Assembly: GCA_964304625.1 (NCBI GenBank) | Contig: OZ199839.1 | Span: 1,314,221-1,378,220, forward strand | Direction of reading: 5' to 3' | DNA from: Kudoa neothunni | Lineage: Eukaryota; Animalia; Cnidaria | DNA: 64,000 nucleotides | Shown here: piece by piece, positions 16,732 to 51,502 of the stretch | Numbering within the stretch: position 1 is the first letter of the stretch | How the letters are laid out: each line of letters begins with the position of its first letter | Notes under the pieces: model-generated | The model's database searches: none | What the model was told of the DNA's origin: nothing | The model's input: only the letters and a program-made list of their open reading frames with translations | Made by a program: the position numbers and the translations under genes

Positions 16732-19700
16732 TTATATAAAAAATGTTGATATTGTTGAGTTGGTACTGGAATTCATCTTGTTGCAATATTCTTTAAGAAT
16801 TCTCGGATATTGATTCTACATAATCGATGAATAATAGAAAGTTACTTCATAAATATATACCTTAAGTTTCTTAATTAGAAGGTTTGTTTTATCGAAAATA
16901 TTTCCTTCAGAATACATAGATAATATCCCAAAAGAAAAGTCCATAATGATAGGCATTAGCTCACTATAATTGGAGGTTTTGTCAGACTCAAATTCTAGGA
17001 TGTCATTGAAAAGGGGAAATAAAAAATCAACAAAAATCTCAATTTTTATTGTTTCGGGATATGACACTAGAGTTTGGAACATTGAAGAAATAGCGTAAAC
17101 AATATGTTCGTTGTGATGTAGTAGCAAATTATGGACAGAATTCTGTAAAACATTTAGACAACTTTCAATGAAGCAGAAATTATATTCGATGACTTCTTGA
17201 TGAATGTATTCTGAATTATCACCTTCACCTTCACCCTCACATTTCATTATATTATCATAATGTTCACAAATAGACAGCGTAATAGCGTTGAATCTTTCTC
17301 CTAAGAACTTCATATCAGCCTCGTTCAGGGTATCTTGAAAGCCAGTTATAATGTAACATTTTGTAAAGGTTTCAATTATAGGACCTATGTTTTTAATTGG
17401 ACAGTTTTTCATGGTTTGTAAAAATTGATTTTTTAAACAGGTTATCCACATAAGTTTAGTTTTTTTGGAATCTCCAAATAGAATTCCACAATTTAAAAAT
17501 TGGTAACAACTTTTAAAAAGTTCATAATAAAGATATTCCATTCCTTCATGTTTTAAACTTTCACATGCAGTTTCAAGTAATGTTGGAACGTATAAAGCAA
17601 ATTCTTTGGCACCATTTTCCGATAACAATGACCCCAGTCGACAAACCAAATATATATTGGCGCGTTCTTGATTGCAATATCCAGTCGTTGATGTTTCTGG
17701 AAGAAAAATATACGAACACTCGTTGGAGATTTCTTCAGTATTTATCTCCAGACGTTTATTTGTTGAATCAAGGAACTTTATCAAAGAAGGAACGAGTTCA
17801 GGGAGTAAAATTTCGAGATAATTCGATTTGATTTCAGCCATTTTTAATAAAAAAGGTAAAAACACAGGCCATATACCTAAGTCATTTTGTCCCAAATTAT
17901 GCCTGCTTTTAAAACCTACCAGGTACCGCATGATTAACGGAACAATAGTTTCTAGATTCTCCGCTGAGAAGTTGGAAACAACTTTAGTCAGACAACGCAC
18001 GATACAATAGACAGATAATTTGTGAGCAGGGATGAAAAGAAGTTTATCCAGGATGTTAGAGAATTTTGTGATTATATCAGGCATATATAAACCAACCGTA
18101 TCTTCCATAAACCGATATGTACAAGATATATACTCACAAATAGGATTCATTAAGAATGAAACCAGTTTAATTTCGTCAGATTTGGAAGGAATTATGTCCA
18201 GCAAATCCAGAAACATTTGAGCGACTCTTTTAAGGGATATTTTGAAATCGATTGGATTTCCCCGTTCCAATATATAACTAATGTTGTAGATGGCTTCACA
18301 CTTAACAAACATAGAAGAATGATATTCAGCTTCGTCTAAGATAATATTCAATGCCGCCATTTGAAAAGTGTCATATCTTTTTCTGTTAAACACAGTTGAC
18401 AAGTTCCCAATTATTTTGATTATAGAATAAGAAATTTTAGAATTATTACTGCGAAAATGAGGAGAAACCATCCCCAAAAATACCCAAGGATCTTTTAAAA
18501 CTCTTCTTGGGTAATGACAGACTATTACGCTTAAAATTTCAACTGCAATATCAATTTGTTTCCAATTGGAAGAATTCAACAAATCAGCGACATGCTTAGA
18601 AAAAATAGGATAAGTGGTTTTATTTCCGAGGATACGAACAATGACTTCAAGGCATGGTGTAACAATGCTTACATCTGCAGTTGAATTTTCGCAAGTGAAG
18701 TTGTAATAATGCAGAAACCATTCTTCAGGATTGGAAGGATACAATTCTGTCTGAAAATGAATCACATTTTCGATGATGATATAAACATAACTTTGATAGT
18801 ATAATCTTACGCTCGTTGGAAAACGCAACATAAGAAGAGTTAAACAGTCGTAAACCTTTGACAACTTATTTTTGTCAATATTTTTGTCCTCGATAAATTT
18901 AACGATTTTTGATATCATTGTATTGACGTGACTTTTAAAAACCCTCTTCCATTGGAATAATAAATTATACATATAATCCATAAAATCCCAACCTTCCTTT
19001 GCAAATATCAGTTCTTCCATTGCATCTATCATTAGAGGAACTAATTTGGAAAATGATCGTACACAATAATTGGATTCAAAGATCAATGAAATTTCGGACA
19101 TAACTTTCATTGCCAGTACAGCGATCTAAATGTTAAATCATCAAACCAACTTTTATGCACATAAACGTTATCTACTACGTAATTTTTAATTTTAATACTT
19201 TAAAATTAAAAGTGTATGAGTAATAATGGAAATTATTTGTTACTTTGGGTGTATGTTGGAATTTTTTAAGGCATGCCGTACAAAATTTCCTATAATGGGA
19301 CACCTGATGCTTTTCCTTTGTACCAAACAAATCAGGGGAGTATCTATACTTGCTATAACTCTCAAAGGCAAAAATAAATTATCACATCAATAAGTTAGTT
19401 ATTGCTTCTGTAAGGCAGGGTTGTTGAATCGATACATAATGAATTGCCAATTCTGCAAGAAATTCCCATTTTTCTGTTCTTACTTTATTAACAATTTTTA
19501 TAAAGCTTGCAAAAACGGCTTCTATTTCTTTTTGGTGGGGTTCGTTTTCCTCCGATATTAGAGCATTTTCAATGTAGCGCTTGATTGCATTGAAACATAT
19601 ATCGGGAACGATATTCTCAGATTGTAGAAGTATAAGTGAAAATGTAAATTTCAATCTTGAAATTGCATCACTTTTTAACTAAAAAACGATAGTAATATTA

Positions 19701-19947
19701 TCTTATTTAATAAAATTCAGATACATCACAACTTTTTCTTGAGGTGAGCACAGTAAACAACAATTCAATCTTTCTCTCAATAGTGATAGTATTATAAATT
19801 TCCTAATAGTTATTTAAAGCTTAAATATTTGTCATTCCTTACTTCTGCCTTTTTAGCTGTAGTATTGTCATCTGATCTCAGTTCACTTAACGTTGAACAG
19901 AAAATACCCAGGTCGATTGAATCAAGATCATTATCCTCGTATTCCAT
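16732..19947 (-). CDS. Diverged importin-5-derived HEAT-repeat protein, paralog P1 (six exons, intact)
   Basis: Exon 1 MEYEDNDLDSIDLGIFCSTLSELRSDDNTTAKKAE aligns to importin-5 exon 1, and all five intron positions are shared. The 764-aa ORF aligns with 45969-48551 (FSKLVP, SNWK, SNNSKI.YS.I). Confidence 0.85.
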
Positions 19948-20216
19948 ATTATTCGATATCACGCTTATAAGTGCTATTCATTGAAATTCACTTATTCGAA
20001 CAAAATCAAAATGCGGATAAAGTACTCGTTTGTTTACAATAATTATTTACGACGATATTAAGAAGGTATTTATTGATAATGAGAAATAAATAATCGCTGC
20101 AATAAATTGTTTTTAATTTACATTTTACTTTTAATTTGAAATTTTTCTGATATAAATTATAAATTAAATTGCAATGGAGTAGTAGATTACACACCGCATA
20201 ATAATTCTTACATTTG

Positions 20217-20226
20217 GCGCATGCGC
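20217..20226. promoter_or_regulatory. NRF1-type palindrome GCGCATGCGC, ~270 bp upstream of P1
   Basis: Perfect GC-rich palindrome in very AT-rich upstream sequence. Confidence 0.3.
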
Positions 20227-21297
20227 GGTATATTTTTTATGTCTGTTTTATTAAATCTATTATTCAATAGATTACAAAAAATTAATTCATTTACATGTAA
20301 AATATTATTTTCAGTTTATCTGAGTTAACTAAATTAAATATAATTAGGCAATATAAAATTTGATAAAATATTAAGTTCCCTGATAATTTCTTGTCGTTGT
20401 TTAATGATAAATTAAATATATATCGTAGTAATTAAACATAAGAATATTTGTAAATTTTAATTAAATAAAATGGAAAGGTTTAATTAAAGCTTATGTAAAG
20501 AAAGATTGAAATAATAATATTATTATTATTATTTTAATTATTTATTATTTAAAATAATGTACAATAGGATTAATCATAAAAAAATTCTTAGGTGTGTTAG
20601 ATATATGAGAGAAAAAAATGAATACATTTTCTCAAACAAACTACAGAATGATCAACTAAGCAAAGATAACTAACGAATTTACAAATAGCAAATTATATAT
20701 GTTTTTACATTTTATCTTAATATTTATTTGAAACTAATTAATTCCTTTGAGGAAGAGACATTCAAGAATCTAGATTATAAATCAACATATAATATTTTTG
20801 AGCAAAGATGAAGATACCAATAGGAAATAATAATCTACTTCGTTTGTTTGATTATAAATTCAGAAACTGAGCAAAATTTAATTGAGAATTAATTAATCAC
20901 GTGGACATTGATTGTGTATTCTTTTATTTGAATAAAAGAGTAATGAAATAATTATCTTTTGATTTTCATAAAAATACTCTTGATTTTATGTAATGAAAAG
21001 ATATTAAAATATGTTTTCACGAAACTCAATTTGGTTAGTCCCAAACTACTCATAATTATATCAGTAAAAGTATTTATATGAGCCTTTGCGTAGATTTATA
21101 TATTAATATATATATATAATTAAATTTATTGAATGGTAATAATTAAAATTAAAAAAAATTTGATATATTTTAATAACACCGAACTAATTAGCTATAAAAT
21201 ATTTAAGTGATAATTCTAACAATATAACTAAACGTGATTTCTTTTTTGAAGTTTAATTGGGAAAAAGGCCAATCTGATGTAAGTAGTTTTGCGAAAA

Positions 21298-21366
21298 TCA
21301 TACAGGACCACTAATGCTACTGGTGCTAACAGAAGCAGACGCTGTAGCAGTAACGGTGGTGGTATC

Positions 21367-21410
<44 letters not shown>

Positions 21411-22859
21411 CAGCAGTACCAGTACCAGTACCAGCACCAGCAGCACCACCAGTACTACCACCAGCACCAGCAGCACCACCAGTACCAGGAGCTGAAGTTG
21501 TAGTTAATGGTGTTTCGCAAATAGCTTTACAGGTTTGAGCAGATTTAAAGTTATTCAAATTCATCTCTTTTCCATTAAATTGAAATGACTGGCAAGTTCC
21601 AGCGTTGTTGCCGGTTGCTACGTAGTAATATCGAGTTAATTCATACATATCCCCGTTGTTATACTCGCCAACTTTTGCCTGTTTACAAACTTCGACAGCA
21701 TTGAGATCACCAAGATGGGCAGCTAATTTATAATAGAATAAAATAAGATTAATAATATTATTGTTGTGAATTACTCGCAGGACAAAAGCTTGCACAGAGC
21801 TCAGCTGAACTAAAAATATTATATGAACCATCATCAATTTTGAAGGGGGTTTCCGGAGCTTTAGAAAGATATGGGAGACAAGCCTTTCTGTCTTTATGGA
21901 AATAAAAGTATTCTTTTATAGTATTGTCATCAGACGTAACTTTTGCTGTAGGTTGAACTTGATAAGGATTGGTTGCACTGCAAGCTGGGACAAGTTCAGC
22001 TATTTTTTGTTAACAAGCATTTATCGCACAATGGAATACTTATGCAATTTTCTACACAACTAGGCAACTCCTCGAAATATCCTCTTTTTGCATTTTCACC
22101 AACTGCAGCATAAACACACCTCTTTTTATCTTTATGTAGAACAACTCCCATTTTCGGGCTCGCAGTGTCCACTTCAGCTGCGAAGCCACAGTCAAATTTA
22201 TTAGGAGTCGGTGTTAGTGGGCTATCGTTATTACTATCAGGAATACCACCATTATTCTTATCTAATTTAAATTATTCTATAGAAATGAGATTCAAACTTA
22301 TACAATTGACATTACTTTGACAAGCATTTTTACATTCAATTTCGGACTCGAAATTATTTGCGTTCCCACCACATCCACTGTATTTGAACTCATGGCAAGA
22401 GTTAACAGCTTCGCTACCATCCACTTTAGCCCTTGAAAAGTACCACCTTGTTTGTCTTTTCTCCACTGGGACTTCACAAAGTCCATCTGATTTAGATTCC
22501 TCACACGCCTTTGATTTCTCCTCAGGCGTAAATGTAACTATTATCAACGTTATTAAAATATGGGATAATCACACTATACGGTGGTATTGACAAACCGCTT
22601 TTGACACAAAGTTATTAAAGTTTCCAAGGGAACCTTTATATTTAAATGGTTTGCATGTAGCGGTCTTTTTATCGACATACCATCTATCAACTACAGCTTT
22701 TTCTTGTTCAACTGAGCCCATCCATGAAGGGGGTTCCCCAGCATCAAAATCATAATTAGTCAGAGCCTTTTCTAGAATAATATTATGACGCAAAGATTGA
22801 TTTAATTTACCAGTCGATACGATTTCTAAACATAATAATAGAAATGATAACCAAAACAT
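21298..22859 (-). CDS. Secreted five-module Kunitz/BPTI-like protein, copy 3, with Gly/Ala/Thr-rich tail (about 444 aa)
   Basis: Exons 22859-22811, 22771-22580, 22537-22316, 22261-22040, 21999-21775, 21722-21298. Introns of 39, 42, 54, 40 and 52 nt, all GT-AG phase 1. Signal peptide MFWLSFLLLCLEIVST. Confidence 0.88.
21366..21490. repeat. Coding trinucleotide repeats: (TAG)n plus CAG/CAC-based repeats
   Basis: Encode poly-Thr and TGGAAGAG repeats in the copy-3 tail. Confidence 0.9.
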
Positions 22860-23803
22860 TACTTTCTGTAAATAATTAAACTATTTATTTCCGTGTAATT
22901 GCGAGATATGAATTACGCTTCATATTATCCGAAGGAATGTTGCATCAATCGATTCATCATTTGTAACAGAATAGCAAAAGTCATGTAATCACAAATAAAA
23001 ATTCGTTAAGTTTATTATATTTATTAGATTAAAAAGTTATTTCAACATGTACGAAAGTAAATCAATTTCGAAATGAACTAATTTTAGCATAATGGTTTTT
23101 ACCATGTAAGCCACAAACATTGATTCCATTTGAGTAGTTGGCAAAACATTGTTATTTCATTTCAAAAATTTTAAAACAGCAAAGAATTCAGATTTGCAAT
23201 TTTTTAGTATAACATCTCTAATGATAAAATAAACATATAAGTTAATTTTCACTTATAATTTATGAGTTATAAATAACCAAGACGATACACCAAATATATA
23301 TTGCTCAAAGGTTGGGTCGTTCAATCTTTAAGTTAAGTTGTGCTTTTCTTAATGTTTTCAACGATATTCGACTACATGGCTGAATTATAATTTTCACATA
23401 AACTCCCAATTAACGTTACTAACTAATATTATAGTTAAGAGTAATAATATTTATAAAAAATTGTTAAGAAAATAGTAAAATAAACTCTTTTACGATTTTT
23501 ATGTGTACAATATATTAAAGCCCAAATTTTAGGGCATATTATTAAATAAGTTAACCGAATATTATTTATTTTAATAGAATTAAGAGTATTCGTACAAAAT
23601 TCGGAGAAATAGAAATCTAAAACACCTAAATAATAAATTCCATAAAATAAGGAATTCTAACTCGGTACACTAAGCTAATCATTAATTTTTCCAAAAAATA
23701 CGGAATTTGAATTTAACATGTAAAATCATTCGAAAATTCAATGATTAAATTAGAAACAAAACTAAATTAAAATATTACATTAAATATGTAAATTGTTTTT
23801 ATA

Positions 23804-25125
23804 CGGTAGTGTATGATGCAACGCTGAAATTGGGGAGATGAAGATCGCTGCGTTGCATCCATTTTTGCGCTGGACACGTTCGAATAGCGCATGCGTTCGA
23901 TCAAAAATAACAGTTTTTAATCGGTAATATACTCAATAATAATTTACTACGAAGAAAATATTAACTTGCATACCTTTTGTTATTAAAATATCGTTCTATA
24001 TTTTTTGTTCTGAAAAAATTGTTCAAATGTTGAGTCAGCGTCAACCATTTTAAGGTCGGTTTATAATTGTCAAGCATTGACAAAATTTTATTTAGAAAGA
24101 GTTTTCTAACTTTTGCCCATTAATATAGTTACTCATGGTTTGATATAATAACTTGATCAAAAAAATCAGAATCATCATCAACCATGTCAAAATCAGGAAA
24201 ATCTGGTGTTGTCAAAATATCTGAGGTGTCGACTACGTTGCTTTCAAGAGTTTCATCAATAATATTTGTTAATTCTAATGATTTCTTCTCTTCAATCAGC
24301 TCAATTATGTAATGTTTAAATTGATCATCATCAGGAACATAATAGGAATCATCATTTAGTGGATTTTTAGAGAGGATAATTGATTTCCTAAAGCAATTAA
24401 CTATGGTTCCCGTTTTAATGTATTCCCATAATTTTATTGTCAAATGAATAACATCTAATACATTAGTTACCATGTAGCCACAACATTGAAAATCGGTCTG
24501 ATGTATGAATGTCGTAATTGGATTTATTTTGTGCAACATTTTAGAACTTTAACAATTCCATGATCCGGTGGCTGAAGCACACTGGTTATGTTCGAAGAAA
24601 AGTAGCAGTGTTACATTAGACAAATATTTTTTGGAGGTTTAATAAATAGTCGAGAAATAATAATGAAAATTTTCTTAGAAATAGTGAGTTTCCTATTCTA
24701 TTTTTCAAGAAAAGATACAAAAATGGAACTGGACATTAGACTTTTTTATTATCGTGCTATTTTATTGGCAAATTTTTCCATCGCTTGGAACTTTGCATCT
24801 TTAGTATATGATATAAATTAGTAAAACCTTATAATTTCAAGTTTTTTGGTAGTCTAAAGTGGTTTTGTTTCATTAAAATTGACGCTCCATCCATTATTTT
24901 TTGCCAAGTTCAGATTAAGCGCTGCGCTCGAGCCATTTTTGAGTTAGATTCATACAGTAAGTTTTCAACCCTAATATTTTGTTAAGAACCAATTATTTAT
25001 TGAAAAATGATCTATTTTGTATTAAAATATCTATTTAAATTTGAATTAAAACAAAATAAATAGTAAATAAGTAAATTTTTAAAAATTGCGTTGGAGCCAT
25101 ATTACGTACGACCCATACACTACTG
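23804..25125 (-). mobile_element. pogo/Tigger transposon remnant
   Basis: TIRs C(G/A)GTAGTGTATG at both ends, TA at left. Decayed TSVLQPPDHGIV and TIVNCFRKS motifs. Confidence 0.75.
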
Positions 25126-25280
25126 TGTTTCCTATTAAAAAATAAAAACTTTTTTCAGTCCTTTGAATGATATTTCAATATATTAAGTATTACGATATTT
25201 AGAACGTACAAAGAACTCAATAGTATCAAAAAATAATCTCAAAAATAGCAAAAATAGGCTTTGTAACTGAAATAATATTT

Positions 25281-31637: not shown

Positions 31638-32960
31638 CTGGTTTTCGAATCCAAAACCGGACTTGTTGCAATCATAACCAGATTCATTGCAATCGAAACC
31701 GGAATATCTTAGCGTGTGTTTATTAAAAAAAATTTCTATTTATTTAAAAGAGCTAGAAAAATAAGGAGTTTATATGTATTTATATATATATTAGTACTAA
31801 ATATATATGTTGTTTGAATCTAGTTACGGTTGATATCCATTAAGAAAAAACTTGGTTCAAAGAATGTTTCTGCATGTTGTAAATAACCTTTTGGATTATT
31901 CTCATTTACCATGTTAGAGGCATTTCTCATCCGATTCAGGAGATCTTCCCCTCCTCGAATTGGAGTATTTCTCCGATCATTTGCCTTTATTTGAGCAAAT
32001 ACCTCCTCACAAGGGTTAAGAAAGAGAGAATACCTCGGCAGGAAATGAATTTCATAGGGAAAGGTATAGTAAATATCCTGGATAGAGTGGTGAAATCGAA
32101 CATTATCCATGATAACAATATAATTATAGCCATCTCCTATAATATCTAGAGGGATTGACAAAAACTTTTTGAACATATTCCCAGAAACGATGCCAAGGGC
32201 GGCTTCATAGTTAATAATATTGATTGCGTTCACCGCGAGTATCATCGTCACATTGGAACCTCGATTGTTCGAAATTACAATGTTTGGATTTTTACCTCGC
32301 AAAGCGCGGTCATGGTTCGTCATCATGTGTAGGGAAAAAGGGCTCTCATCAACACAAATTATATTTTTGTACGCATTTCGATAGGAATTCTGGTATACCA
32401 ATAGGCGCAAAGTTTCCTCTCGTCTATTACAGCGGGGATATTCCTACTAACTGGAATAGGTCTAACAACTTTATACGTGTAGTTTAATTTTTTGAGCCAT
32501 CTACATACAATGGATGGGTGAATTGCGATGTCTAATTTTTCAATTAAACTCTGAATTCTTAGAGTGCAATTGTCTTCAAGTAGTTTTATTAATTTATCTT
32601 TAAGTTCTCGTGCTACGGCAAGATTTCTCATCTCTCCGCGTACAGTCTTTTTGGATGTATCAGTCACTTTATATTTTTTATCAAATCACTCATTGTCGAT
32701 TTAAGAATCCCTAGATACTCCGAAACGTCTTTCTGACACTTCCTTTTATTCACAACAAGATGGCAAGCAAGAGCTCTTTTATCTTCGGGTGATGTATTTT
32801 TCGTGGCATCATGAAAGTTGCTTGTTTTTTATCTGTTTTTAATTGCGATAAATCTAATTTCAGTTACATCGAATTTGGTTTCAACTGCCAAAAATCTTGT
32901 TTCAGTTACAACGAATCCGGTTGTGATTGCAACAAGTCCGGTGCTGGATGCAATAACCGG
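31638..32960 (-). mobile_element. IS630-Tc1-mariner element with a frameshifted DDE transposase (31820-32810)
   Basis: VDESPF, IMDNVRFH, LPRYSLFLNPCEEVF motifs; HTH in 32359-32667. TIRs are built from ~22-bp ACCGGA..GCAATC repeats, with TA flanks. Confidence 0.88.
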
Positions 32961-36586: not shown

Positions 36587-39500
36587 TTATTCATTAACAA
36601 GGAGTTTTTCAATAATTGATTTTTTGTTTGGGTCTATATTTTCTAAATTATCCTCAAAAAACATATTGAAGTTGCTCTAAAAATAAAAATAATACTACAG
36701 AAATATTCAACTGAATAACCTTTATCTTTTTTATTATTAATCTTGATTTTTTCGTTACGTCGTCATCGTAGGACGCTGGCAATACCTCGAGGGAATAATT
36801 CCAAATATCTAGCAATATTCCACACTTCTTGACTATCTCTGGTGGTACCAAATCAAGAGTATCCTCTGATATAAGTAACAAAAATTTTATGAACTTATCC
36901 CAATTGTCTGTTTTGGGATAGTGCATAAGTGATTTGAACATAGGAATCACAGCATCGATAATAATTTCTCTATTCATTCTCATTACTTCATGAATTAACT
37001 TATGAAAATTTTCTAAGCTATCATTAATATCGACAGTCTCTAATATTTTGAGGACATTTGAATGCTCAGTTTCGGGTTTATCGTCGCATTGTAATAGGTC
37101 CTCATTCTTCCGAATGAGCACAGCAATTGCAAGAGAGAAAATTTCTCCGAGTTTTTCAATGTCACCGGTATTCAAGACATTTTCGAAACTAGGTATAGTG
37201 ATGCATTCCCTTAGCACACTCAATAGCTTGATTATTATCGATTTGGAAGAATTTTTAATGCAGTTCAGGAATTCGTTCTTGAGGTGACTATTCCACACAT
37301 TGATGGCACCCTCGGCATTTCCATACAAGACAGCGCAATTGAGCAATTTATGAACACTCTTTGCAGTGGTGTAATAAATGGATTCATTTGAGGCATTCTT
37401 GAATATTTCAGAAAGAATACTTAGCTCAATTTCTACATTCCCATGGAATTCATCAGGATAGTTTTCGACCAAAATGGTGGCGAATACACACAACCAATGT
37501 ATAACCCCGAGGTAGTCGTCGCAAAAGCATCTAGTACAACCATATAAAGGAGAAGTTTTTAAAATTTCAGTTAAATCCCCTTCACCGGATTCACTAACCA
37601 CCGGAACTATATCAGAGAGAATCGTGGCTATCGACGATTTCAGCTTGGGAAATAATGGCAGTAAACCTGATGGTTTATGTTTAGCGAATTTCTTTATCAA
37701 TGAAAAGAAACAAGGTAAAATGTCAATTCTTTGTTTTGATAACTTATTTGAATTACTAAAGCCTAATATATAAAATATGACTGATGAGAAATTTTTTTCA
37801 ATTTCATGTGGTGGACTATCCGAAACGACCTTATAGAGGTAACCTGCCAAGCAATGACCTTCGTAACCAAAACTAATGGATGTTAGCTCGATTTTGCGCA
37901 ATATTTTAAAAATATCGTCGATTATTTCGTTGTGGAAATGGGAGGTGGATTGAAAAATTCGAAGTATACCATCTAAAATTAGAGGCGTAGTATTTATCAA
38001 CCGCATCGTCAAATCATTGTCATTAGAGTTGAAAATAAAATCTGACAAGGCGGTAAAAAGCTTCATCGTTCCATCCAATGTAAGCTCAAGTTTGTCGCAC
38101 TGACAATTCATGTATATATTGTCCACAGCATTTATCGCTACTATTTTTAGGTAGGCATTGCTTTGATTTGTTGCCGCTACTATAATTAACGCCAAAGCTT
38201 CTTGGTGTAATCTAACATATTTTTCTCGGTGGAAACTAACACACAATACTTCGGTTAGTTTTATAGTGGAATATCGAATTTTAGGATTATCACTGTAATA
38301 ATAAGGTGTCGCTGTTCGAATCACCTCCCGAGGGTCACAGAGTACACTTTGGCGTGAACAATAGGCAAATATGCACAATATTTCGAGAGCCGTATCAATC
38401 CATTTCCAATCAGATGATTTTATACACTCATCCACCCGTTTCTTTAACAAAGCGTAGAGAAGTTCACTTTCAAGTGAACACAAAATATCAGTCAAATAAG
38501 ACTGTGTTAATGATAGATCATTCATTAAGAAAGTATCGCATTTTTCGAAATTGTCTGTAAACCATTGTTCTGGTTGGTTCGGATAGGATCCAATATGAAA
38601 ACAGAATGCATTATCAATAAAAGTTGGTATAATATTTTCGCAGTTGTTTCTAACTTCTTCGGGAAAATGCATAATAAACTCTTTGGTCCATTTATATACC
38701 TCCAGAAGGACTGGTATTTCAACGCTGCTGTTTTTTTGAAGTTTCACTACTGTTTCGATTATCTGTTTGGAATAATTTCCAAAACAAACAATTCCAATAT
38801 TCTAACATAGTTTGCATATGTTCCATAAACCAAAATCCCATCACTAGTAGGCACAAAATTTTCCATTGCGTTCATTATTTGTGGAACCAACCTGGAAAAT
38901 GTTTCAACGCAAAAATCATCAGATAAATGATTAGATAAATAATTTAGGATATCCACTGCAAGCCGTGCAAGCTAAAATACAGTTTTTAATCGAAATATAT
39001 TAAATAGAATATTAAATTATTAACAAAATAATTGAGTATCACAACAAAAATATGGATTCAACCGAAAAAGATTACTGATAGGTAGAGTTATTAACAAATT
39101 CAATTATGAGTGGATATTTATACATTCGGGTTTCCTTTAATTTTTCTAAAGCATTCCGTGAAAAATAGATTGTATTGTTCACATTGATCTTTCATGTTTT
39201 CTCCAAACAATGTGCGAGAATTTCTACAATTAAAAGTTACATATTTATAAATTGAGAATTTATTTTACATTAAAAAGTTTTTTGCAAAATTGTACTGAAA
39301 TGGCTTATTAGTAGCCAGAAAACGGTCAGCTAACTCAATTATAACTTCCCATTTGTTTATTTTATTTTTGTTGACCACTTTCATAACAGTAAAGCACACC
39401 GATAATAATTTTTTTTATGCGCTTCCATTTCTTCAATAACTAGAAGATTAAAAATATTTGACTTTATTTCAGTGATTAAGGCCTCTGAAGCATGATTTTC

Positions 39501-39819
39501 CGTGAGAAACGAGGCGCATAAATTTTCTAGAATCGATGATGCTGTTTCTTTTAACTTTACGTAGGTCATATAAACGGAAAAATTGAAATGTACCTTATAA
39601 GGTTGTTGAGAGGACAAAACTTCGAGTAGCAGTTGTATTCTCTGGTTGATCGGGAATAAATTCAATTTTATCTATAATCACCATTTTATCTAAGCATTAC
39701 TTACAGCATTACCTCTTGCAAACCATCCTTTGTGTCGTCCTTATTATCCAGTTCATTTAAAATTGTGCAAAATTTAAAAAAGTCCGACTTTTCACAATCA
39801 TTTCGTTCAGTAGACTCAT
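36587..39819 (-). CDS. Diverged importin-5-derived protein, paralog P3; 5' exons carry homopolymer frameshifts (pseudogene or consensus error)
   Basis: 697-aa uninterrupted ORF with the same exon structure. Single-base indels near 39817, 39412, 39365, 38838 and 38777 are needed to restore alignment. Confidence 0.75.
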
Positions 39820-40725
39820 TTTTATTGAATTGGATGTTAATTTTTATATGGATGCTCACTGATTTCAGTCAATTTATCCGATCGTTGTGCAAATACACAA
39901 ATACCGATAATTTAATCGGGTGTTTATGCATCATTATTCATTAATATGTTAATATTATTTTCAATAAAAATGTTTATGATAAAAAAACTAAACTTTTATT
40001 TTTTTTAGTAGAGTTACGGCATCAATAATCATCTCGAAAAGATAATCAACGAAATATTGTAGATGTTAATCATTTTTTGTATTTTTATACAAAATTAACA
40101 ATAAAATTCTTTTTTCATAAATCATAATTACTCTTTTCGAAGATAACTTTCATGTTATGTTTATTAGTTTAATTCGATGAATCGAATAAACAAACTTCAA
40201 AATTAACACTTACCATAGAAAAGTAAACAAGGCAAAAAAGGTTACATAATCAAAAACGTACGACAGCTTCCCAAACTTAATGAATAAAATCTATTAATTT
40301 TTTCAGATGTCGGAATATATCGACGTTAGAATTCTGAAAAATGGGACTTGATGTGGGTGACATCAACAACTAGACGAGAATTTTCCATTGAGAAGCTTTA
40401 CACTCATCGATAATACTTCTATAAATAAGGCTTACTTTCGAAGTCAAAAATAATGATAATTTCTTTTAATGCATTATTTACTTTAATTAATGATCGGATT
40501 GATATTTTACGGTTTACATTTATTTTTAATGTTAGTTTGTATATAATTGTTATACATCAATAGTGAAAAATCTGAACAGTAATCATAAATAACTTTTGAA
40601 TTAATTACTAAGAAAGAAACAAACAAAATTATTCAATGTTTGTTAAAATAAGCGCATTAAAGTTAATGCGGATCCAAAAGATATTAATTTGAGCAATGAG
40701 AATTAATTTTCTTGTGTTTGCTTCA

Positions 40726-41140
40726 TCTCTATTACTCTCTCTATTTTTGTATCACCTAAAAAGTTAGTGATGTACACATTTTCTGAGTCGGTCCAGAATT
40801 CGACTTTAAAAATCCCCCGGGCCAAAAAATAGCGTATTATATTGCACTTTAAACAAGTTAAAACAATTTGGAAACGAAAATAAATTTGAGCAATGACCCT
40901 AAATTATTAACGTTGGTTGGGGGACAAGAAATTGTTAATTAAAAACCAGGATTAATACATTCCTGCTCAGAAATGATTATGATTTAAATTTCAAAATCAT
41001 TATCGACTAAGTATGATGCTTTAAAAAGTTAGTTTGACCGCTTTTATAAAGCAATTTGAATCAAAATATTTTTTTGAAAGTTAGAAAAAAACATCTCTAC
41101 GCCGAATCTTCCCCAAGTAAAACTGGGCAGTTCGCGCTAA
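40726..41140 (+). mobile_element. Helitron fragment related to 33719-34848
   Basis: 3' end TCTTCCCCAAGTAAAACTGGGCAGTTCGCGCTAA|T matches the other copy; the 5' boundary is tentative. Confidence 0.5.
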
Positions 41141-41732
41141 TATATTTGTTTTACCGTGCTAAATTAACTAGTTATCCACGTAACGGATTTCAAAACATAA
41201 TTTGAGAAAGTTAATATTTTATTAACCAATAATACAAATACAATCAGTTAGGTTCCCTTATTTGATAAAATCAGTAAACCTTAGAGAAATAAAAAAAATT
41301 TTTTAATGACTAAAAATTTTGGCGTAATCTCATTAGAATACAACAAGTGTGTAAAACTATTGAAATTTAAAATGTGGACATGCGTATAAAATTGTTTCAA
41401 GGTTACATAAATCATCTTCACTCCTCCACAAATACTGTCAGGAAAGTTATTTCTTTACGAAAACAATGCTATCCACCCTATTAACGTTAATCTTAACATT
41501 TTACGCACGTGCGACGGATTTTTAACCCTTCCAACCTACTATTTACAGACTTGCAGCTTACTTTTAAACATGCATAGATTATCGTTTCACAACCACAATA
41601 AGACTTATAGTCATCAGAAATAATTAATTATGATCATAACACTTCAGAAGTTAAATTAAAAACAGTCACTTGAGAATGATCTGAATTTAGCGTAACGGAT
41701 ATTAAAATTAAATAATATTTATTGATGTGTAT

Positions 41733-44700
41733 CAGACAATGCCCGTTCGTGTGTTCGTTCGTGTCATGAGCGAACGAAGTTTTCTTCATAATTATAAACA
41801 CGAATGAACTTTTCTGATTTTTAAACTTTTGACACGAAACACGAACGAAACCATTCGTGCGTTTCGTGTGCGAGGATGGTGATGAAGTATGTGGTGTAGC
41901 GGACGAGGGTCGAACACACATGTAATCTCCATATTTTTTCAACAAACACTGAATTTTTTCGTTTCTTTCTTAGTTATTAATGAGAAAGTTATTTATTATT
42001 ACTATTTTGATTTTTACTATTGTTATATAACGATTTTATATGGACTAACTTTAAATATTAACTTATTGCGTGTCTCACAAAAAGATCTCATTTTTCACTA
42101 TAATGAAAATACTTTTCGAATTTAAAAAATAGATCTTGATGTCGTACGATTTTTTTTAGTTTATAATTTTTTAAAATGACAATAGAAAACTGTTTTACAT
42201 TGCAGTATTTGTATTATATTGAAAAAAAAAATATTAAGCTATATTTTAATTATTTTGTAAGTTTTTGTGTATGTCAAAATTTGTAACAACAAATTCGGGC
42301 CAATGTACGAATTGAGAATATTACTAAGTGTAAACCCAATATTTTAACTAAGGTTATTATTTTGATCTATACATATAATTAACTAAAACTAATGAATGTA
42401 TAGAAAACAATTTTTTGATTTCTAATAACAACATTTTTAATTTTATCGAATGTTATACTAAACACACGTAAAAATTCCTCTAATAAAGTAATAACTTCAT
42501 ATAATCAACCTTTAATTGTTTACCTATTGAAATTAAATGTTTATCTAAAATATACTATTTATTTATTTTTAAAAACTCATCAGTACTAAGAATATTAAGA
42601 AAATGCATTTTGAGAGTACGTAGTTGTCCTCGTTTTTGAACTATTCGTAATTAAAAACTAATAAAAACATGTATAAATAAATCTGATATTGTATAATTTA
42701 TGTTTATATGCTAAAAAATATGAAGAATAACCAACTTATGAGTGATTATCAAAACGAATTAGACAACAATTCAATGTTTGTTGAAAAAAAGATATTCGAA
42801 TAACATGCACAAGCGGGCGTTTTTTAGGTGGCGCATACTTTACCATTACCAAAAAGAATCTTAGATATGAAATTACCATTAAATTTTAAGCGAAGAAAAT
42901 ATGAGGCATTGAATGTAAGAAATTACGATCTTTACCTTGATTTACTGGAATTTTTGAGATATGTTACCTCATGTCACAATTTCATATTTTATTACCAAAT
43001 ACAAATTTGATATCAGTTTTTTTTAAAAGATAATCAAATTAATTTAGGAAACAGAACCTCGTTATATTAAGTTCCGCTATAGTCAAATCTGCCTAAAACA
43101 TTTTTTAGAATGATAAAAATACTTTCAAACCCTAATTTTATAAGTCTAATAGTTAGAAGTGGCTAAGTTAGGTCTGTTCAGTTTTCTTTTGAGATAATGC
43201 AAAATAAAACATAATAAAGAGAAGGAGTGAATTAAATTCACTCCAGAAGTGTCTTATTTTTAATATTATTAGTATAAACTACTAATTTTCTTAATGTGTT
43301 CGGTTCAAGTCTATATCTAGACTTGGATAAAATTTTTCCAGCGTATGAAAACGCCCGTTCTGACATTGAGCTGGATGCTGGTCGGCTGTACACGTTAGTT
43401 GCAATTGTTTTAAAGATTTTCATTCTTGGAGTTTTCCCAATAAACGAGCGGATCTTCGTAACTTGGTTGACTTTTTCTCGGATTTACAGTTGAATTTCTG
43501 ATTGAAAATCTTCTGAGTCACTATCCAGTTTCATAACATATTGAGTGGGTTTTCAGAAGTTCCGAGCTCTTTGGGATTAATTCTAATTTTTTTAAAATAT
43601 TTGTTACAAGAAAAGATTTACCATCAAATTTGTTTTTTTTATATGGGTAATTTGGTTCAGCCATGCCAGACAAAAGCGACTCAACGTGATTTACCACAAA
43701 ATTTAATTCTTTATTTTGCAAAGACTTACACTCAATAAATTTGAATTTTTTAAAATTTGGATGGAGAAAAGCTGCGATTTTATGGTTGATATCAATACAT
43801 TGTGTGTATTTTTCGTCCAATAAACTTTCCAAATGCATACAATAATCGCCCATAAAAGTTTCACGTTGTTTTTGAATCATTGCTTTGATACGATGAAATA
43901 CAATAAACACCTAACGATAATATAAAAAACGAAACTTAAACGGATTACAAAATGTGACGATGGCCTTTTCACCTGCTCCAACTGATCAAAGAAATCGGAA
44001 AATATTTTGAAAAATTCAGCTATAACAACGCATTCTTTCTTGTCCAATCCGTCAAAGTATTTTTTAGCTGGATGATTTTTTAGCACATCCTCCAAACTAT
44101 CGAAACACGCCACTAACGTCCTATATCGATCGCTGAGGCCTCTCCATGGTCGCGTAGCTGAGCCCCATTGTATTTTCATTGGTAATTTTGACTGTAAATC
44201 CGCCGTTTTATGAACAGATCCGCACAGTTTGTCAACATTCACCCTTAGTATGGATAAATCGGATGTGCTGTTTGTACTAAGATCCCAAGCTACACATAAT
44301 AAAAAAATCGAAATTAGATATTATAGCGAAAGTAAAATTTATTTATAAACTCAGTGATAAAAAAGTGTAATCAATATATTAAAATACATAAATATAAACT
44401 ATTTAAATTTAGATTATAACAGTTTTATCTTGATTTTCCAAACAGAATTATGAGAGATCAAGATAGCATATCGTTAAGTATATCACTTTTACAATTATTT
44501 ACTCACCAAAATTTTAACATAAATTTAATACATAAAATACCTTGAGATATAATAGTGTGAAGGCGGTGAGCAGCACATCTGGTTGTGTTGAACTCTCTTA
44601 GACCAGATAGATTGTTTGCTGTGGAATCACAAACAATTCTTAGATCAGATTTGCTAAGTGAAAATTTAATACAAAATTCCGTGCAGATTTTATTTATATT

Positions 44701-45457
44701 TTCGGCAGTGTGTTTTACAGGAAAATAGATCATGTTCGTATTGGAAATGTTGAAGGGTGAAATTTTTAACAAACAACACTGATATATCAATGAATGAGTT
44801 GATTTTAGCATTATCAGTCCAAATATCAATGGTTAGGCACATACTATTGTGACTTATTGTTGTAATTAATTTTTCCATTTTTAAATACATGCACTCATAC
44901 TCATTCATGATTATTTTTTTAACACATTTTTTGGATAAAATCTTAAGTCTAGCACTAGGTTCATTGAACTTTTTGCCTAAGTTAAATGCGAAGTTTATCA
45001 TCTCCGTAAACGAAGCACTTTCTGTTATTGTAAACGGGGAGATCGTTTCAGCTACAAAATTAGCAATTTTAGTGTCAAACATTACCTGATCTGATAGGCT
45101 TAAATTAACAATGGAGGGAGGTGAAACAAATAATTCATTAATTTTTATATTTGTTTTAGCATGTAACTTATTATGACTAATAAGCTTCCTATTCCCGTAA
45201 GACGACTTATGCGGGAATGCTTTGTTGCACTTTGTTGCAAACAATAAAATCAATTTGGGATGTTTCATCCCCGTTTTTAGTAAAGATGGAACAGAAATTG
45301 TCCCATTCTTTAGAATGCGTTGTAGATTTTTTCCAAGAGAAAAGTCTGCTAGTTTTCAAAGCCCTCTTCAACACTTTCCACACTCCAGCCTGACATAGTG
45401 TAACCAAAAGAGGACACGAACGAACGAAATTTTGCACGAACGAACGGGCATTGTCTG
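41733..45457 (-). mobile_element. hAT (Ac/Hermes-like) transposon
   Basis: 18-bp perfect TIR CAGACAATGCCCGTTCGT. Perfect 8-bp TSD ATGTGTAT (41725-41732, 45458-45465). Subterminal (C)ACGAA repeats at both ends. Confidence 0.95.
43238..45396 (-). pseudogene. hAT transposase, disrupted: BED finger, DDE core, hATC dimerisation domain
   Basis: W..F...CNKC...H...H; LTIDIWTD; VCDSTAN; RCAAHRLH; TRPW; AAFLHPNFK; PASSSMSERAFS. Contains introns, frameshifts and at least one stop. Confidence 0.88.
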
Positions 45458-45755
45458 ATGTGTATACACGACAATAACCGTTAAATGTCGGAAAAACTAT
45501 GATCCTAAGGGAGGAGAGTAATGAAATTATTGCAAATGAGTAGAGTTAGCTGTTAAATCTAATAGAAAGGAAAAATACGCTACTCACTTTAAAAAATTGC
45601 ATATTCAAATTTCAAATACAACAAGATAACAAAATTAAGAATAAATCGGTGAAAAAGCCTAATCACACGATCACAAAGAAAGCAACCAACAATCATGAAC
45701 AAATAAGTGAAAACAATGAAATTTTCTACGGTACTCTAGCGCGAGGGAGTGACGT

Positions 45756-48700
45756 TTATTGATGGTTTTTAATGATTCTATCAAAGTTGGATTTTTCACT
45801 CTCATCAAGAGAACTGAGAGACTGAGCAAGTTGTGTTGGGAAAATGCTCTAAATATGCAGAATTTAGAGAGGAACTGGGTAATAAGAAGATATATTTTAA
45901 GGCAGACCAAGATAATCTCACCCTGCAATTTAATGATAGTAGCAACAGCCTTTTTACAAACATTATCGTCAGGGCACTCCAAAAGCATGGCGACTATAGC
46001 ATGAAGTATTTTGGAGTTGTGTTGGTCGTTGTTGTTTTTGGAAGATGGCGTTAGCTTGAGTGTCGATAAGTTCGCAGAGATAGCCAAGACAAAAGTCCAC
46101 CTCATCATCCAACACGGGTAGCAATTGAAGCCAATTTTTCATTTCTTGAGTGGGATCGGAGAAAAGTTGAGGCACAAATCGAATGTAACGACCATAGGCA
46201 GCGATACAATTTGCGGTGGCTGCAATGTTATCAGGGTTGTTGGCGGCGGGATCACTAATGTGTTGCACCAGTAAAGGTACCGATTGCGAGTAGGTAGTTA
46301 TAACAGTTGGACACTTGACTTTGAGCAATGAGGCCAAATCCGAAAGCAGTAACTTGCCTCATGTCAGGATTTGTGGATGCAAGATAGTGAAGCATTTTCG
46401 GCATAAAATCCACATAAATGTTGGGTGCGGTTTGAGGAGCGAATTCCACAACATCATCAAAGATACAAAACGAAAATCGAATATACATATCGACTGCGTT
46501 TCTCATCAAGACAAACCAGAAGAGTTTTATACATAAGGTCGATGGCGGTTAGAAACGCTTGTTTGAATACGGAAAATAGGTCGTGAGTGCACGATTGTAA
46601 ACTTTGTAGAATATATATCATTGATGTACATTTGTTCCACTTCACACTCATCAAAATATCTCTTCATCCTCCTCATCTCCTTTGAGATGTTTGGCTTGTG
46701 AGAGTTCGTTATCGTATTGGATGAGTGATACAATTTTGGCGTTGAAAACCTCACCAAGGTATTTGATTTCGGCTACATTCATCGATTCGTTGCCGAGTAA
46801 GGTCACACATTTGGTGAAGTTTTCAAGAATATCTCCGAAAATCTCTTCATTGGGATCATCTTTGATGGACAACAACAGAACATTTTTGATGCTTGCATTC
46901 CATAGGTTCATGGCGTAAGCAAGGTTGCCATTGAGTATGAGGCAGTTCAACAGTGGTGGTATACAGTTGGTGAGATAGGTTCGAATACTGTCTCCGGCGT
47001 ATTTAGAGAAAAGCACCAACAAAATCTGCAAACAGGCTTCAACATACTGAGCAAAGTCGGATTTTAAATTTTCCGCCAAACTTGTTATAAGATCACAAAC
47101 CACGCACTTATCATTCATATAGTCATCGCTATAGATATTATCGGGATCATAGTTCGCCATCTGAGTTCAATGTATTTTGAATAATGGAAGAATTGCTGAC
47201 TCCATTGTTGGCATCGTAAGTGGAGAGGAAATTTAGCAGGGAAGGCACCAATTTGGGGAGTATAGAGGTGAGGCAATTCGGCCCGATGTCGGCTAATTTA
47301 GTGAGTAATGAATAATAGCTGAGTTGGATTTCTAGTTGATCAGGTGTTTTTTCGCTGAGGGTGCTGAACGATTCCACGTATTTGAGAATGGTTGGAATGT
47401 AGCGTTCGACAGCGCCTTCCGTCTCATAAGACGATACAACTCTGACCAAACAATCCAATATTTGGTTAATTATCACACTGTGGCTTGGCTCGAATGAAAT
47501 CTTATCGAGAATGCTGAACAGATTTTGAATAACACTGGGAGCGTAAGGCTCAAATTTGGCGCCAGTTCGATCACATATGTGTATCACGGCGTTGGTAACT
47601 GCTCTGGTCAACAAATTGATCCCGTCCACATTCATGTGATGGAATATGGATGAAGATATGTTGATCAAAAGTTGGCACATGGTTGGCGCGTACGATTCCA
47701 GCAATTCATCGTTACATCCGTCAATCACATTGACAAATGCGAAAACCGCTTGCGACTGCACCTTGATAAAATTATGACTTTCTGCCACTTTAAAAATGAG
47801 CGGGAACACTTGAGAGTGGAAATGGTTGTGAAAGTAACCGGGGTAGTCACTCGATAGCTGACCGATAGTGTTGATAGTTGAAAACACAATCTTGGGATTG
47901 TTACTAGCGAAGAAGGGCGAGATAATCTTGACAATCTGAGGCAGCATTGGTTTCATTTGTTTCCTGCAACCCTCGGCGATCGCTCCCAACGACACTAGTG
48001 CTGCATCTTGGAATTTCCAGTCTGGATTTTGTAAAAATTCTGTCACTTTTTGCAAGGCCAACGGTAAAACCGTTTCGCCTTTCAATGCGCAAGCAATTCT
48101 ATCTAACGAGGTTTCGCCAAAATAGGCACTCTCAGAGAGGTTGTCTTCGGCGCACTCATCATACTGGGTCAACCATTCGGCGAGTTGTTCCTCGTCAATC
48201 TCAGTAAGCATATTGTATGCATAATTAATGATTAGGGGGATATATTTGGGGCATGCTTTTTTAATTGCACCGGGCACTTTTTGAACGTAACTCACCAACG
48301 CTTCAAATATATCATACACCACAGTTTTTTCGACATTGGGAACATTCAACAGGCCAATCAATACTTCAACAACCTGTGCTACGTAATCTTTGAAAATTCG
48401 AGTATTGAATTCCAACAAGTTTGTCATAATGGGTCATGCATAATGATCCCTCCGGGGTAAGGATCAATGATTGTGTTGCAAGCAGAAGAAAAGGAACCAA
48501 TTGAGAAAAAACTTTAACCGAAGCTTTGTCACTATTCACTTCGGCTATCATTCCAAGGGATTCGATAGCCAGGACGCTTAACTATATAATAGAAAGTGAG
48601 TGTTTGTTTAAGGTGTACATTCATTAAAGCTATAACATTATTTCTTAACCAATTGTCTAATTTGAATATTTTAACTAACTAAACTAACCAAACTAACCAA

Positions 48701-51502
48701 ACTAATTATGGGGAATAAATGCGACGTTTAGCGGGAATTAATGTCACGCATGTAAATTTTTCAAAAGTTGTAAAATAATATTCATCTATCGCCATCTTAT
48801 ACGCGTAAAATAACAAACATTAATTAGCACGTTTAAATTAGAGCTGTAATGGGAGTATTTCATTTGAATAGAACAGCGGTGGTCAAACCGTGGCTTTTGG
48901 AAAAAATTTTTTTAAATTCACTAAAGTACAACGTTTAAACTGTTTAATCAAGTGAAGAAATTAAATCTTAAATCGTAAACCGGAAAATATTTTTGATTAG
49001 AAAACAGTTAAAAACTACCATATCGCCTTAATATTTGACGCAAACTAGAATTAGTACCGATTTCATTACGAAATACAATTAGAACTAGTGTTTATCCAAT
49101 ACCAAATATCGAAAGAATAAAACACACATTGAAGTTTTATAGATGATTCATAATTCCAACACGCCAAGGGAATGAATTTTGGAAATATATTCCAGAAAAT
49201 AAATATTCAAAATTACAAGAAATTTGTCTGAAAATTGTTCCAACAACTTATTTTTGTGAGTTTATTTATTCAACGACGGAGATTGTAAATTCGAAGCATC
49301 GCGGATCTCTCCCTCCCTCCCTCCCCCACAAACAAACAAACACCTGACTGGACTAATTCGTACAGCGTTAACGGCATCCGCCGACCCAGATTACCGTATC
49401 GTCAGCTCACAGATAATATGGAAACATAAAAAACTTGTAACATAAAAATTTCTAAACAATTCGAAAGCATTAAATTCCCGCGTCATTACTTTATTCATGA
49501 ATATTTAATTCTATGTTTTGTCAGACACCATGTATGACTAATTATAAAAAATATTTTATTATTATTATTACGACCATTTTCACACATAAAAAGTTTCTTG
49601 GGTTATTAATTACTAATTTACTATATAGGAAAAACCATCGCAAATTATACCAGTAATAATCATTTGTAAGTTTTCCAACCATTAACCGAATAAGAAAAAA
49701 ATAAAAATCCAACATTTGATCCTAATATTTACCAAAAATTTTTCGAGAATTAAAGTTTTAAATAAGGAAGAGATGCGTAAATGATTTTAACGCCTTGTGG
49801 CTCTCGAAACTTTGGGCAACCTTAAAGTTTGTTCCCGATCTGGGCAATTTTGGCAGTTTGGCCACCTCTGGAATAGAAAGATTTACATACTGATACTGAT
49901 ACTGATACTGATAATAATAATAATAAATGAGTAATATAAAATAAGGCAGCCCTCACTTTTGTTATACAGAAAAATGTGGATCATAAAGTCGATTTTAAAA
50001 AAGGGAGAAATAAACATAGATACAATGCTTATTTATGTTCAAATTATGCAAAAATTACAGCATGCGCAAAACTCTTAGAAATCTACAAACAACAAATAAT
50101 TTATCTCGATACTAGTCAAAAGCTTTACCAAATTAATCCTACTAATTGTACGATAATAAACAAATTCCAAGTGTTTGCGCACCAATTAATGGTTGCCATC
50201 GCTTGATAATTGCCCATTCATCCTAAGGCAACAAATTTTAAAAACAATCGATGAAAAACTACTAATAGAAAAATTAAATATTTTGGTCAAGATGATATAT
50301 TTTTTGGAAGATACATCATTCTGTAATTATAATGTATGTGTGCGCTAATATACGTGAGATTAGGGTAATTACAAAAAGCAAGAGAACGAATTAATTTTTA
50401 ACAATAGAAATTAACACCCAATCCATTGTTTTAGTTAAATCAAGTAATTCAATACCCACACCTAATCTCTTCCTTGTGTAGCTTTAAAGTATTAAATTGT
50501 TTTGTAACTAACATAACACAACAACGACAACAACTCAGAAATAAATAGATCTAGAAAATTATCAATAATGAAAGCTCCAAGAAAGAAACACAGAGATTGT
50601 GTAAGATTTTTGAAACTAAGAAATACGAGCCAATAATCTCAGGCTTTATTTATGCAATGACGTGCGCAAGACAAATTAATTCCCGCGGCTGTCGGATTGT
50701 TAAACTGTTAGCTCCACATAGTTAAAAGCTTGATTGACAAGAACACCAAAAATAACACCATACAGCAAAACATAAAAATTACCTTAGGGTGAGCTTGGAA
50801 ATTTTGAAGACTCTTCATCAGAAACTGCACATATCGCGGCATAATTTGTTTCATTTTCTCTCCAAACAACGTAGGGAAATATCTAAATCGAGGATTCCAA
50901 ATAACAACCTAGCACCATCACCACCAAAAAATCCAGCATACATAACAAGAGTGAGCGCAATTTCATGCATTCGAGGGTCATTAGAAGCAACACAGTTGAG
51001 AACAAAAGTTACACTTTCCTCCCATGTGTTGGCTCCATCCGAATAAAAAACCTCCATAAGACTAGACATCAGAGAGATGAGTTTTTTCCGATAGGAAGCA
51101 TTCTCTTCGCTGACCACCAACTGAGGAATACACTGCTTGGAAAATGCATATGTTTGTTCGGATACCTCGTTTCGGGAGATCGAGTTAACAAAAATCATTT
51201 TCAGTGTAACACATGCGATATTTTTCAACTATACAAGCCACATTTATCACAATTCACGTGCAGTAATCAACGTGGTAGTAGTTACGTCAAGAGAGGCTTG
51301 AGATGTGAGAACATGTAGCAACAGTTGGGCACGATTTTCCGTGGGAATTGAAGTTAGTTGACTCTAATCGTTTCGAGTTAAGTAGTTCACAGTCACATCA
51401 ACCGAATAATACCTCAGCTGTACGCCGAATGTTATTGTCATGATTCATAAGAGATGACAGCACTGTGCAAAATTGTTCAAAATGTTGAGAGTTGCTGTTC
51501 AT
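45756..51502 (-). CDS. IPO5: Importin-5 / karyopherin beta-3 (Kap121/Pse1 family), six exons, with eight +1 frameshifts in this sequence
   Basis: DNNIRRTAE, GETSLDRIACALKG, WKFQDAALVSLGAIAEGC, NTIGQLSSDY, CIFDDVVEF, RQVTAFGFGLIAQ, ATANCIAAYG and WLQLLP..D are hallmark importin-5 motifs. ATG 51502; stop 45756; large intron 48582-50782. Confidence 0.9.
48874..49870 (+). mobile_element. Internally deleted hAT (Buster/Charlie-type) element in IPO5 intron 4
   Basis: TIRs CAGCGGTGGTCAAAC / CAGAGGTGGCCAAAC; perfect 8-bp TSD GAATAGAA; residual TTYFCE..YS...SKHR transposase tail. Confidence 0.88.
49888..49927. repeat. (ACTGAT)4 followed by (AAT)n microsatellite
   Basis: Read directly from the sequence. 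Confidence 0.8.

Follow-up and report, generated by a model that had tools for sequence, protein, structure and literature searches.

A lineage-specific family of divergent, importin-5-derived genes beside the parental gene in the myxozoan parasite Kudoa neothunni

We analyzed a window of 64,000 nucleotides from the genome of the myxozoan parasite Kudoa neothunni, in which the importin-5 gene (IPO5) is accompanied by three very divergent relatives, here called P1, P2 and P3. The three paralogs belong to a larger family of at least 14 full-length genes, which descends from IPO5 and encodes solenoid proteins of HEAT repeats. A chromosome-scale assembly of K. neothunni is reported in a preprint as a by-product of host genome sequencing (10.64898/2026.02.11.705288). 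The genome analyzed here comprises 40.26 Mb in four contigs (genome G000, contigs C1-C4) with about 30% guanine plus cytosine (GC), and the window corresponds to C2:1314221-1378220. Splice sites and introns were read directly from the DNA, homology searches were made exon by exon, and a read-corrected version of IPO5 exon 5 was used in local comparisons.

All four genes are located on the minus strand, with the paralogs downstream of IPO5. The place and strand given for them in a preliminary description of the stretch therefore hold, and so does the assignment as HEAT paralogs of a conserved IPO5, which is matched by BLASTP. The large exons of P1, P2 and P3 align with a 426-amino-acid exon of IPO5 with E values of 4e-37, 1e-21 and 8e-27 (20-26% identity) and with each other with E values of 1e-45 to 7e-66 (22-27% identity). 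The comparison of P1 with the read-corrected exon 5 gives 227 bits across 751 amino acids. P2 is the most divergent member of the family, with 18-20% identity to IPO5. Five introns occur at the same positions in IPO5, P1, P2 and P3, and their phases are 0, 0, 2, 0 and 0. Exon 2 consists of 78 nucleotides in all four genes and exon 4 of 100 nucleotides in IPO5, P2 and P3. The introns are in general 26-57 nucleotides long, except intron 4 with 118-2201 nucleotides. Intron 3, a spliceosomal intron (GT-AG, phase 2), measures 26 nucleotides in IPO5 (50908-50883), 27 in P1 (19385-19359), 46 in P2 and 45 in P3. Because the five parental introns are all kept at their positions and phases, the paralogs are DNA duplicates and not retrocopies, as had been concluded earlier from the common intron structure.

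The spliced frames of P1 and P2 are fully open over 979 and 977 codons, in agreement with the preliminary description. In P1, position 16732 is the last base of the stop codon, and an alternative acceptor at exon 4 would give a start at 19352. The 697-codon open exon described for P3 is also found; it is counted from the first start-type codon, a GTG, within a stop-to-stop frame of 715 codons. P3 carries three lesions: an ATA at 39847-39845 in place of the ATG of its relatives, a frameshift in a run of eight A at about 39415 and a frameshift in a run of T at about 38785. It looks like a young pseudogene; both frameshifts fall in base runs and might be errors of the assembly.

The gene at 51502-45756 is the IPO5 ortholog of K. 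neothunni. Position 51502 is the A of its ATG. Pfam recognises the domains Importin_rep_4 (E 2.8e-12), HEAT_EZ and TPR_IPO5, and the gene is the sole Importin_rep_4 locus in the whole genome. Its best library match is IPO5 of the myxozoan Henneguya salminicola (32% identity, E 2e-68). As assembled, exon 5 shows repeated frame jumps, which are always +1 as judged by homology, and at least four of them leave no room for an intron. For this reason, read contigs of two public DNA runs from one sample (X1 and X2) were compared with positions 45650-51600 of the window. Each covering contig omits one base at eight sites of exon 5, which coincide with the frame jumps that had been placed by homology, and none of the contigs backs the version of the window. 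No substitution was found between contigs and window, and in the remaining 3 kb outside exon 5 there is no other single-base insertion or deletion; a single X2 contig has an 8-nucleotide insertion at 49105 in intron 4. Without the eight bases, exon 5 is a single exon of 884 codons ending in CAG|GT, followed by intron 5 with 73 nucleotides and a last exon of 30 codons. Since the read contigs omit the eight bases, the frame breaks do not belong to the gene: in the reads, the parental IPO5 is intact, and the extra bases are a local assembly fault. The jumps had also been considered as tiny or odd introns, for which all GT/GC-AG options were listed, or as signs of a dying gene, and both are ruled out by the read contigs; fitting introns of 40 and 28 nucleotides in exon 5 are needless once the eight bases are removed. 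A generally faulty assembly is ruled out as well, as two actin genes and four HSP70 genes are each intact in one frame. For users of this public chromosome-scale assembly, it should be noted that the one IPO5 gene it contains is locally faulty, with eight spurious bases. Run X1 also contains 98% of the words sampled from the P1 gene region.

When the IPO5 exon and P3 were used as queries against the genome, 14 full-length members were found on three chromosomes. Their large exons are open over 637-796 codons, and exons 1-4 as well as the terminal intron and last exon are recognisable in nearly all of them. Pairwise protein identity is 21-46%, with the exception of one 90% pair (C2:6.32 and C2:6.35 Mb). 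This pair is a mosaic, in which the 5' 1.65 kb differ at few bases and the 3' part by 5-10%. Behind each member of the pair, in the region C2:6.316-6.351 Mb, lie partial copies of the C-terminal block, and some of these copies contain stops. With P1 exon 3, a four-copy array of short members was found in addition at C2:2.114-2.131 Mb. These genes consist of exons 1-4 and an exon 5 truncated to about 100-119 codons, and encode N-terminal-only proteins of roughly 300 amino acids. The description as a tandem family holds for the three genes beside the parent, but not for the family as a whole, whose 14 full-length and four short members are dispersed over three chromosomes. P1, P2 and P3 are also not each other's nearest kin. 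P2 and P3 belong to different subclades, and the closest relatives of P3 (46% identity) are the members at C2:6.32 and 6.35 Mb, 5 Mb away from the cluster. The flanks of the paralogs share no sequence and show no inverted or terminal repeats, and transposon-mediated capture is unsupported for this reason.

The origin of the family from IPO5 was examined by score, phylogeny and alignment. Against the read-corrected exon 5 of IPO5 from the same genome, each paralog scores 119-227 bits over 600-750 residues, whereas the 150 top library proteins yield at best 37-62 bits; for every paralog, its own IPO5 outscores any other protein two- to fivefold. A maximum-likelihood tree, from a quick search and with a small number of outgroups, groups the 14 members in a single clade with a support of 100 in the Shimodaira-Hasegawa-like approximate likelihood-ratio test (SH-aLRT). 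The stem of this clade measures 1.26 changes per site and joins IPO5 of the same genome (branch 0.32). P1 branches first within the clade, and P2 and P3 fall into different subclades. As a separate clade on a long stem, the paralogs are not one-to-one IPO5 orthologs. Residues of about 730-860 of IPO5 exon 5, which are about 130 amino acids of C-terminal HEAT repeats, are missing in all 12 full-length members included in the alignment (two of the 14 were left out), so that the full C-terminal set of HEAT repeats is not present. Taken together, the match to the own IPO5, the single clade, the common deletion and the identical set of five introns point to a single DNA-level duplication of IPO5 in this lineage, followed by the deletion and then by expansion and dispersal.

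These data also support that the family is specific to the lineage. A profile searched exhaustively against 1.84 billion library proteins returned no family member and had H. salminicola IPO5 as top match with 105 bits, and a word-index protein search with the large exon of P1 gave no match; such absence is weak evidence, because protein collections may omit this genome or its near relatives. A metagenome contig of 1126 nucleotides (ENA ERZ28624939, scaffold_13759) contains a relative whose frame is interrupted by one in-frame stop and changes twice. With 34-46% identity to the members at C3:7.54 and C1:10.12 Mb, this relative is much closer to them than to IPO5, and the family therefore occurs in one or more further organisms or samples. 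Literature searches on myxozoans and karyopherins yielded no description of the family.

Despite their extreme divergence, the genes are constrained as coding sequence, as the preliminary description had concluded; this is shown by the long frames at 30% GC and by the codon-position pattern. About 11 members keep frames of 750 codons at more than 70% amino acid divergence, and the calculated chance probability of one such frame at this composition is about 1e-27 per gene. Nucleotide identity follows the order second > first > third codon position in nine of nine pairs tested. For P1 and P2 the identities at positions 1, 2 and 3 are 0.41, 0.56 and 0.36, with a random expectation of about 0.27-0.29; the protein-guided alignment somewhat inflates the values for positions 1 and 2. 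In the youngest pair (C2:6.32/6.35 Mb), the ratio of non-synonymous to synonymous substitution rates (dN/dS) is 0.85 in codons 270-480 and 0.23 in codons 488-732. A conserved motif specific to the family, YPxNPxxWF, stands in place of the acidic loop of IPO5. The isoelectric point (pI) is 4.9-5.8 in most members, compared to 4.54 in IPO5. Lesions are present in three members, namely P3, C1:15.47 Mb (exon 5 split over two frames) and C2:11.85 Mb (in-frame TGA), in a count which leaves out the partly masked member at C3:7.54 Mb. P1, P2 and most other members do not have the features of pseudogenes, P3 has them and the two other damaged members probably do. Judged by their frames and codon patterns, most members, P1 and P2 included, are kept open under protein-level constraint, and a few, P3 included, seem to be decaying.

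The fold was compared by profile and by structure prediction. A profile of 13 members matches human IPO5 in the PDB with an E value of 2.6e-24, colinear over residues 201-860, and Kap121 with 7e-12; no family besides IPO5/Kap121 was found in the PDB at E<=0.01. For P1 exon 5, AlphaFold predicts an all-helical solenoid of paired helices, with a predicted local distance difference test score (pLDDT) of 81 and a predicted template modelling score (pTM) of 0.72. In a Foldseek search with this model, the top 12 matches are RanBP5 (best, 9e-12) and Kap121, ahead of Kap123 and importin-4, and template modelling scores reach up to 0.64 for the Kap121-RanGTP complex. The comparison with Kap121 and IPO5 suggested earlier thus gives the expected nearest structures, and the paralogs combine a HEAT-repeat solenoid with homology specific to IPO5/Kap121. 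A look-up in the Protein Atlas gave IPO4/5 only. Across all contigs, the Pfam model IBN_N matches a single locus (C3:4.006 Mb), so that the remaining karyopherins of K. neothunni seem to be either very divergent or few.

On the whole, we regard it as probable that the genes form a lineage-specific birth-and-death family of HEAT solenoids from a single IPO5, which act as karyopherin-like cargo binders. An ancestral IPO5 duplicate with all five introns dropped the approximately 130 residues of C-terminal HEAT repeats, after which its rate of evolution was about 7-10 times that of the parent. From it arose at least 14 full-length genes, of which three stand in tandem next to the parent and the others are spread over three chromosomes, together with the four short N-terminal-only genes. 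The proteins may still be karyopherin-like cargo-binding solenoids, either specialised import receptors or chaperones, with diversified cargo-binding surfaces. Several observations weigh against this explanation. No importin domain was found by Pfam at threshold in any paralog exon, though the parent is recognised; the missing IBN_N match says little, because only one locus is found genome-wide. Divergence is even along the protein (19-33% identity), without a better-kept Ran-binding end, and C-terminal repeats are lost in every aligned member. Two members are basic or neutral (pI 8.55 and 7.75). The few outgroups of the tree and the inflated codon-position values have to be considered as well, and the dN/dS of 0.85 found over part of the youngest pair could reflect relaxed constraint just as well as adaptation. 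The RNA runs X10 and X11 contain no reads on the IPO5 stretch and are hence uninformative on the paralogs, and RNA contig runs with the same species label contain none of the words of P1. The species label of these RNA runs is probably that of the host.

Some of these points would also fit HEAT scaffolds or adaptors, which kept the solenoid, lost binding to Ran and the nuclear pore, and took over another role in this lineage, for instance in the biology of spores or plasmodia. Divergence has taken the N-terminal exons and the acidic-loop region past recognition by Pfam, the loop is exchanged for a new conserved motif, C-terminal repeats are gone, evolution is far faster than in the parent, and there are four short N-terminal-only genes. 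However, the overall fold is still nearest to RanBP5 and Kap121, most members are acidic as karyopherins are, and the Pfam failure is a weak argument in a fast-evolving genome with IBN_N at one locus only. We therefore consider scaffolds possible, though rather unlikely. A variant of the receptor explanation, in which copies are gained and lost and inner surfaces diversify for proteins of the host, of viruses, of transposons or of certain nucleus types, with the short genes as regulators or competitors, may be envisaged but seems quite unlikely. Quick turnover and change would also be explained if the proteins were decoys or receptors engaged in an arms race against transposons, viruses or host factors. 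The birth-and-death dynamics with lesions in three members, the clustering of changes in codons 270-480 of the young pair beside its near-identical 1.65-kb stretch and the interleaving of the cluster with remnants of Tc1/mariner, hAT and MULE elements are consistent with this. Yet dN/dS is nowhere above 1 where tested, the clustered changes could stem from gene conversion with the adjoining partial copies, and the flanks share neither sequence nor terminal repeats. Such a role appears improbable to us. Of the claim of a lineage-specific neofunctionalised family, the lineage-specific part is thus upheld by bit scores, clade and common deletion, whereas the functions proposed with it are hypothetical.

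Decay of all paralogs to functionless pseudogenes is highly unlikely, and is already contradicted for P1 and P2. P3 has no ATG and two frameshifts, two other members contain a frameshift or an in-frame stop, the relative on the metagenome contig is broken, and transcripts were not seen, in RNA runs which are also without IPO5 reads. These observations are outweighed by the long frames kept in about 11 members, by codon-position patterns of protein-level constraint, by the dN/dS of 0.23 that the young pair shows in its C-terminal third and by the preserved splice sites and phases of the five introns. An assignment to another established karyopherin-beta subfamily present across animals, such as importin-4/Kap123, had been named as the finding that would overturn the derivation from IPO5. 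Kap123 and importin-4 do occur in the fold search, at lower ranks. The PDB profile matches IPO5 and Kap121 only, every paralog is matched two to five times better by its own IPO5 (119-227 bits against at most 62), and the best of the 1.84 billion proteins is again an IPO5. Together with the single clade, the common deletion and exactly the five introns of the parent, this leaves such an assignment extremely unlikely.

Table 1. Position and structure of IPO5, its paralogs in the window and further family members in the K. neothunni genome. Unless a contig is named, positions refer to the window.
Feature	Position	Strand	Basis or remark
P1, intact, 979 aa	16732-19947	-	gene model from DNA and BLASTP
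P1 exons	19947-19843, 19802-19725, 19678-19386, 19358-19244, 19125-16861, 16815-16732 (last with stop)	-	DNA
P1 large open exon, 764 aa	16816-19110	-	open reading frame
P2, intact, 977 aa	25281-28898	-	gene model from DNA
P2 exons	28898-28794, 28753-28676, 28632-28346, 28299-28200, 27692-25446, 25397-25281 (last with stop)	-	DNA
P2 large open exon, 746 aa	25416-27656	-	open reading frame
P3, with lesions	36587-39868 (gene model about 39847-36587)	-	DNA
P3 exons	about 39847-39713, 39671-39594, 39554-39269, 39223-39124, 38971-36720, 36676-36587 (last with stop)	-	DNA
P3 large open exon, 697 aa	36654-38747	-	open reading frame
IPO5, six exons	45756-51502	-	about 1110 aa once eight extra bases are dropped
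IPO5 exons	51502-51413, 51363-51286, 51228-50909, 50882-50783, 48581-45923, 45848-45756 (last with stop)	-	splice sites in DNA
Eight single-base insertions, IPO5 exon 5	45921, 46035, 46291, 46493, 46614, 46653, 47153, 48428		absent from read contigs
Members on C1	10.12, 11.61, 13.36, 15.47 Mb		
Members on C2	P1, P2, P3 of the window; 1.76, 6.32, 6.35, 11.85 Mb		
Members on C3	0.69, 1.93, 7.54 Mb		

Further genes and remnants were observed in the window. Several genes with Kunitz/BPTI domains are located on the minus strand (5981-6925, 12542-13540 and 21298-22859), one of them with a long Thr-rich tail; the loci at 5981-6925 and 12542-13540 resemble a duplicated pair. An open frame at 1856-2245 has a MULE/ZSWIM match in Pfam and is similar to a transposase remnant. 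Reading of translations revealed four more frames of this kind (31820-32667, 43238-45545, 58943-59626 and 63330-63647), of which one is Tc1/mariner-like, two are hAT-like and one is a pogo-like DDE frame. Those at 31820-32667 and 43238-45545 are located between the paralogs and IPO5, and the frames at 1856-2245, 58943-59626 and 63330-63647 flank the cluster. Outside the window, the mitochondrial COX1 gene (C4:1216-5445) is very divergent; it contains eight TGA sense codons and has 42% GC, compared to 30% in the nuclear genome. The HSP70 sequences match those of many animals at 75-78% and say little about the affiliation of the genome. A search for the SL1 leader of nematodes was negative, which speaks against a typical nematode, and an eriophyoid mite is ruled out as the source by its long introns.

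Importin-5, also described as RanBP5 and in yeast as Kap121 (Pse1), is the known protein which is most similar to the family. Both are HEAT solenoids with colinear homology over about 660 residues, a mostly acidic character and the parental gene structure. In contrast to importin-5/Kap121, the paralogs are only 18-26% identical to the parent, have lost about 130 C-terminal residues, carry YPxNPxxWF instead of the acidic loop, show no detectable Pfam importin domain and are present in at least 14 copies instead of one. RanBP6 of vertebrates is a paralog of IPO5. Like RanBP6 and importin-4/Kap123, the Kudoa genes are duplicates inside one karyopherin clade. Those proteins are single, conserved and widely distributed, whereas the Kudoa family is multi-copy, fast-evolving and not found outside its lineage. 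In Drosophila, duplicates of nuclear-transport genes (Ran-like, Ntf-2r and importin-alpha copies) are linked to the testis and to genetic conflict. They are likewise fast-evolving, lineage-specific copies of conserved transport genes, but they are often retrogenes, derived from genes for small proteins or for importin-alpha, in contrast to the far more numerous, intron-bearing karyopherin-beta duplicates described here. Ciliates such as Tetrahymena possess nucleus-specific paralogs of importins and nucleoporins. Expansion of transport-factor paralogs in the presence of several kinds of nuclei is common to both systems, as myxozoan plasmodia hold vegetative nuclei and generative cells; the two groups are unrelated, and different genes are involved. 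A link between the family and nuclear types in Kudoa can, by this analogy, be put forward only as a hypothesis.

In eukaryotes, karyopherin-beta genes usually occur in single copy and rank with the best conserved of all genes. It is therefore unusual that an otherwise streamlined genome of 40 Mb contains at least 14 open copies of one karyopherin-beta, which differ from each other by more than 70%. If expressed, the family would be a natural experiment on how far the solenoid of a transport receptor can diverge and still work. It could also hint that nuclear import is specialised in this parasite, whose stages include cell-in-cell and multinucleate forms.

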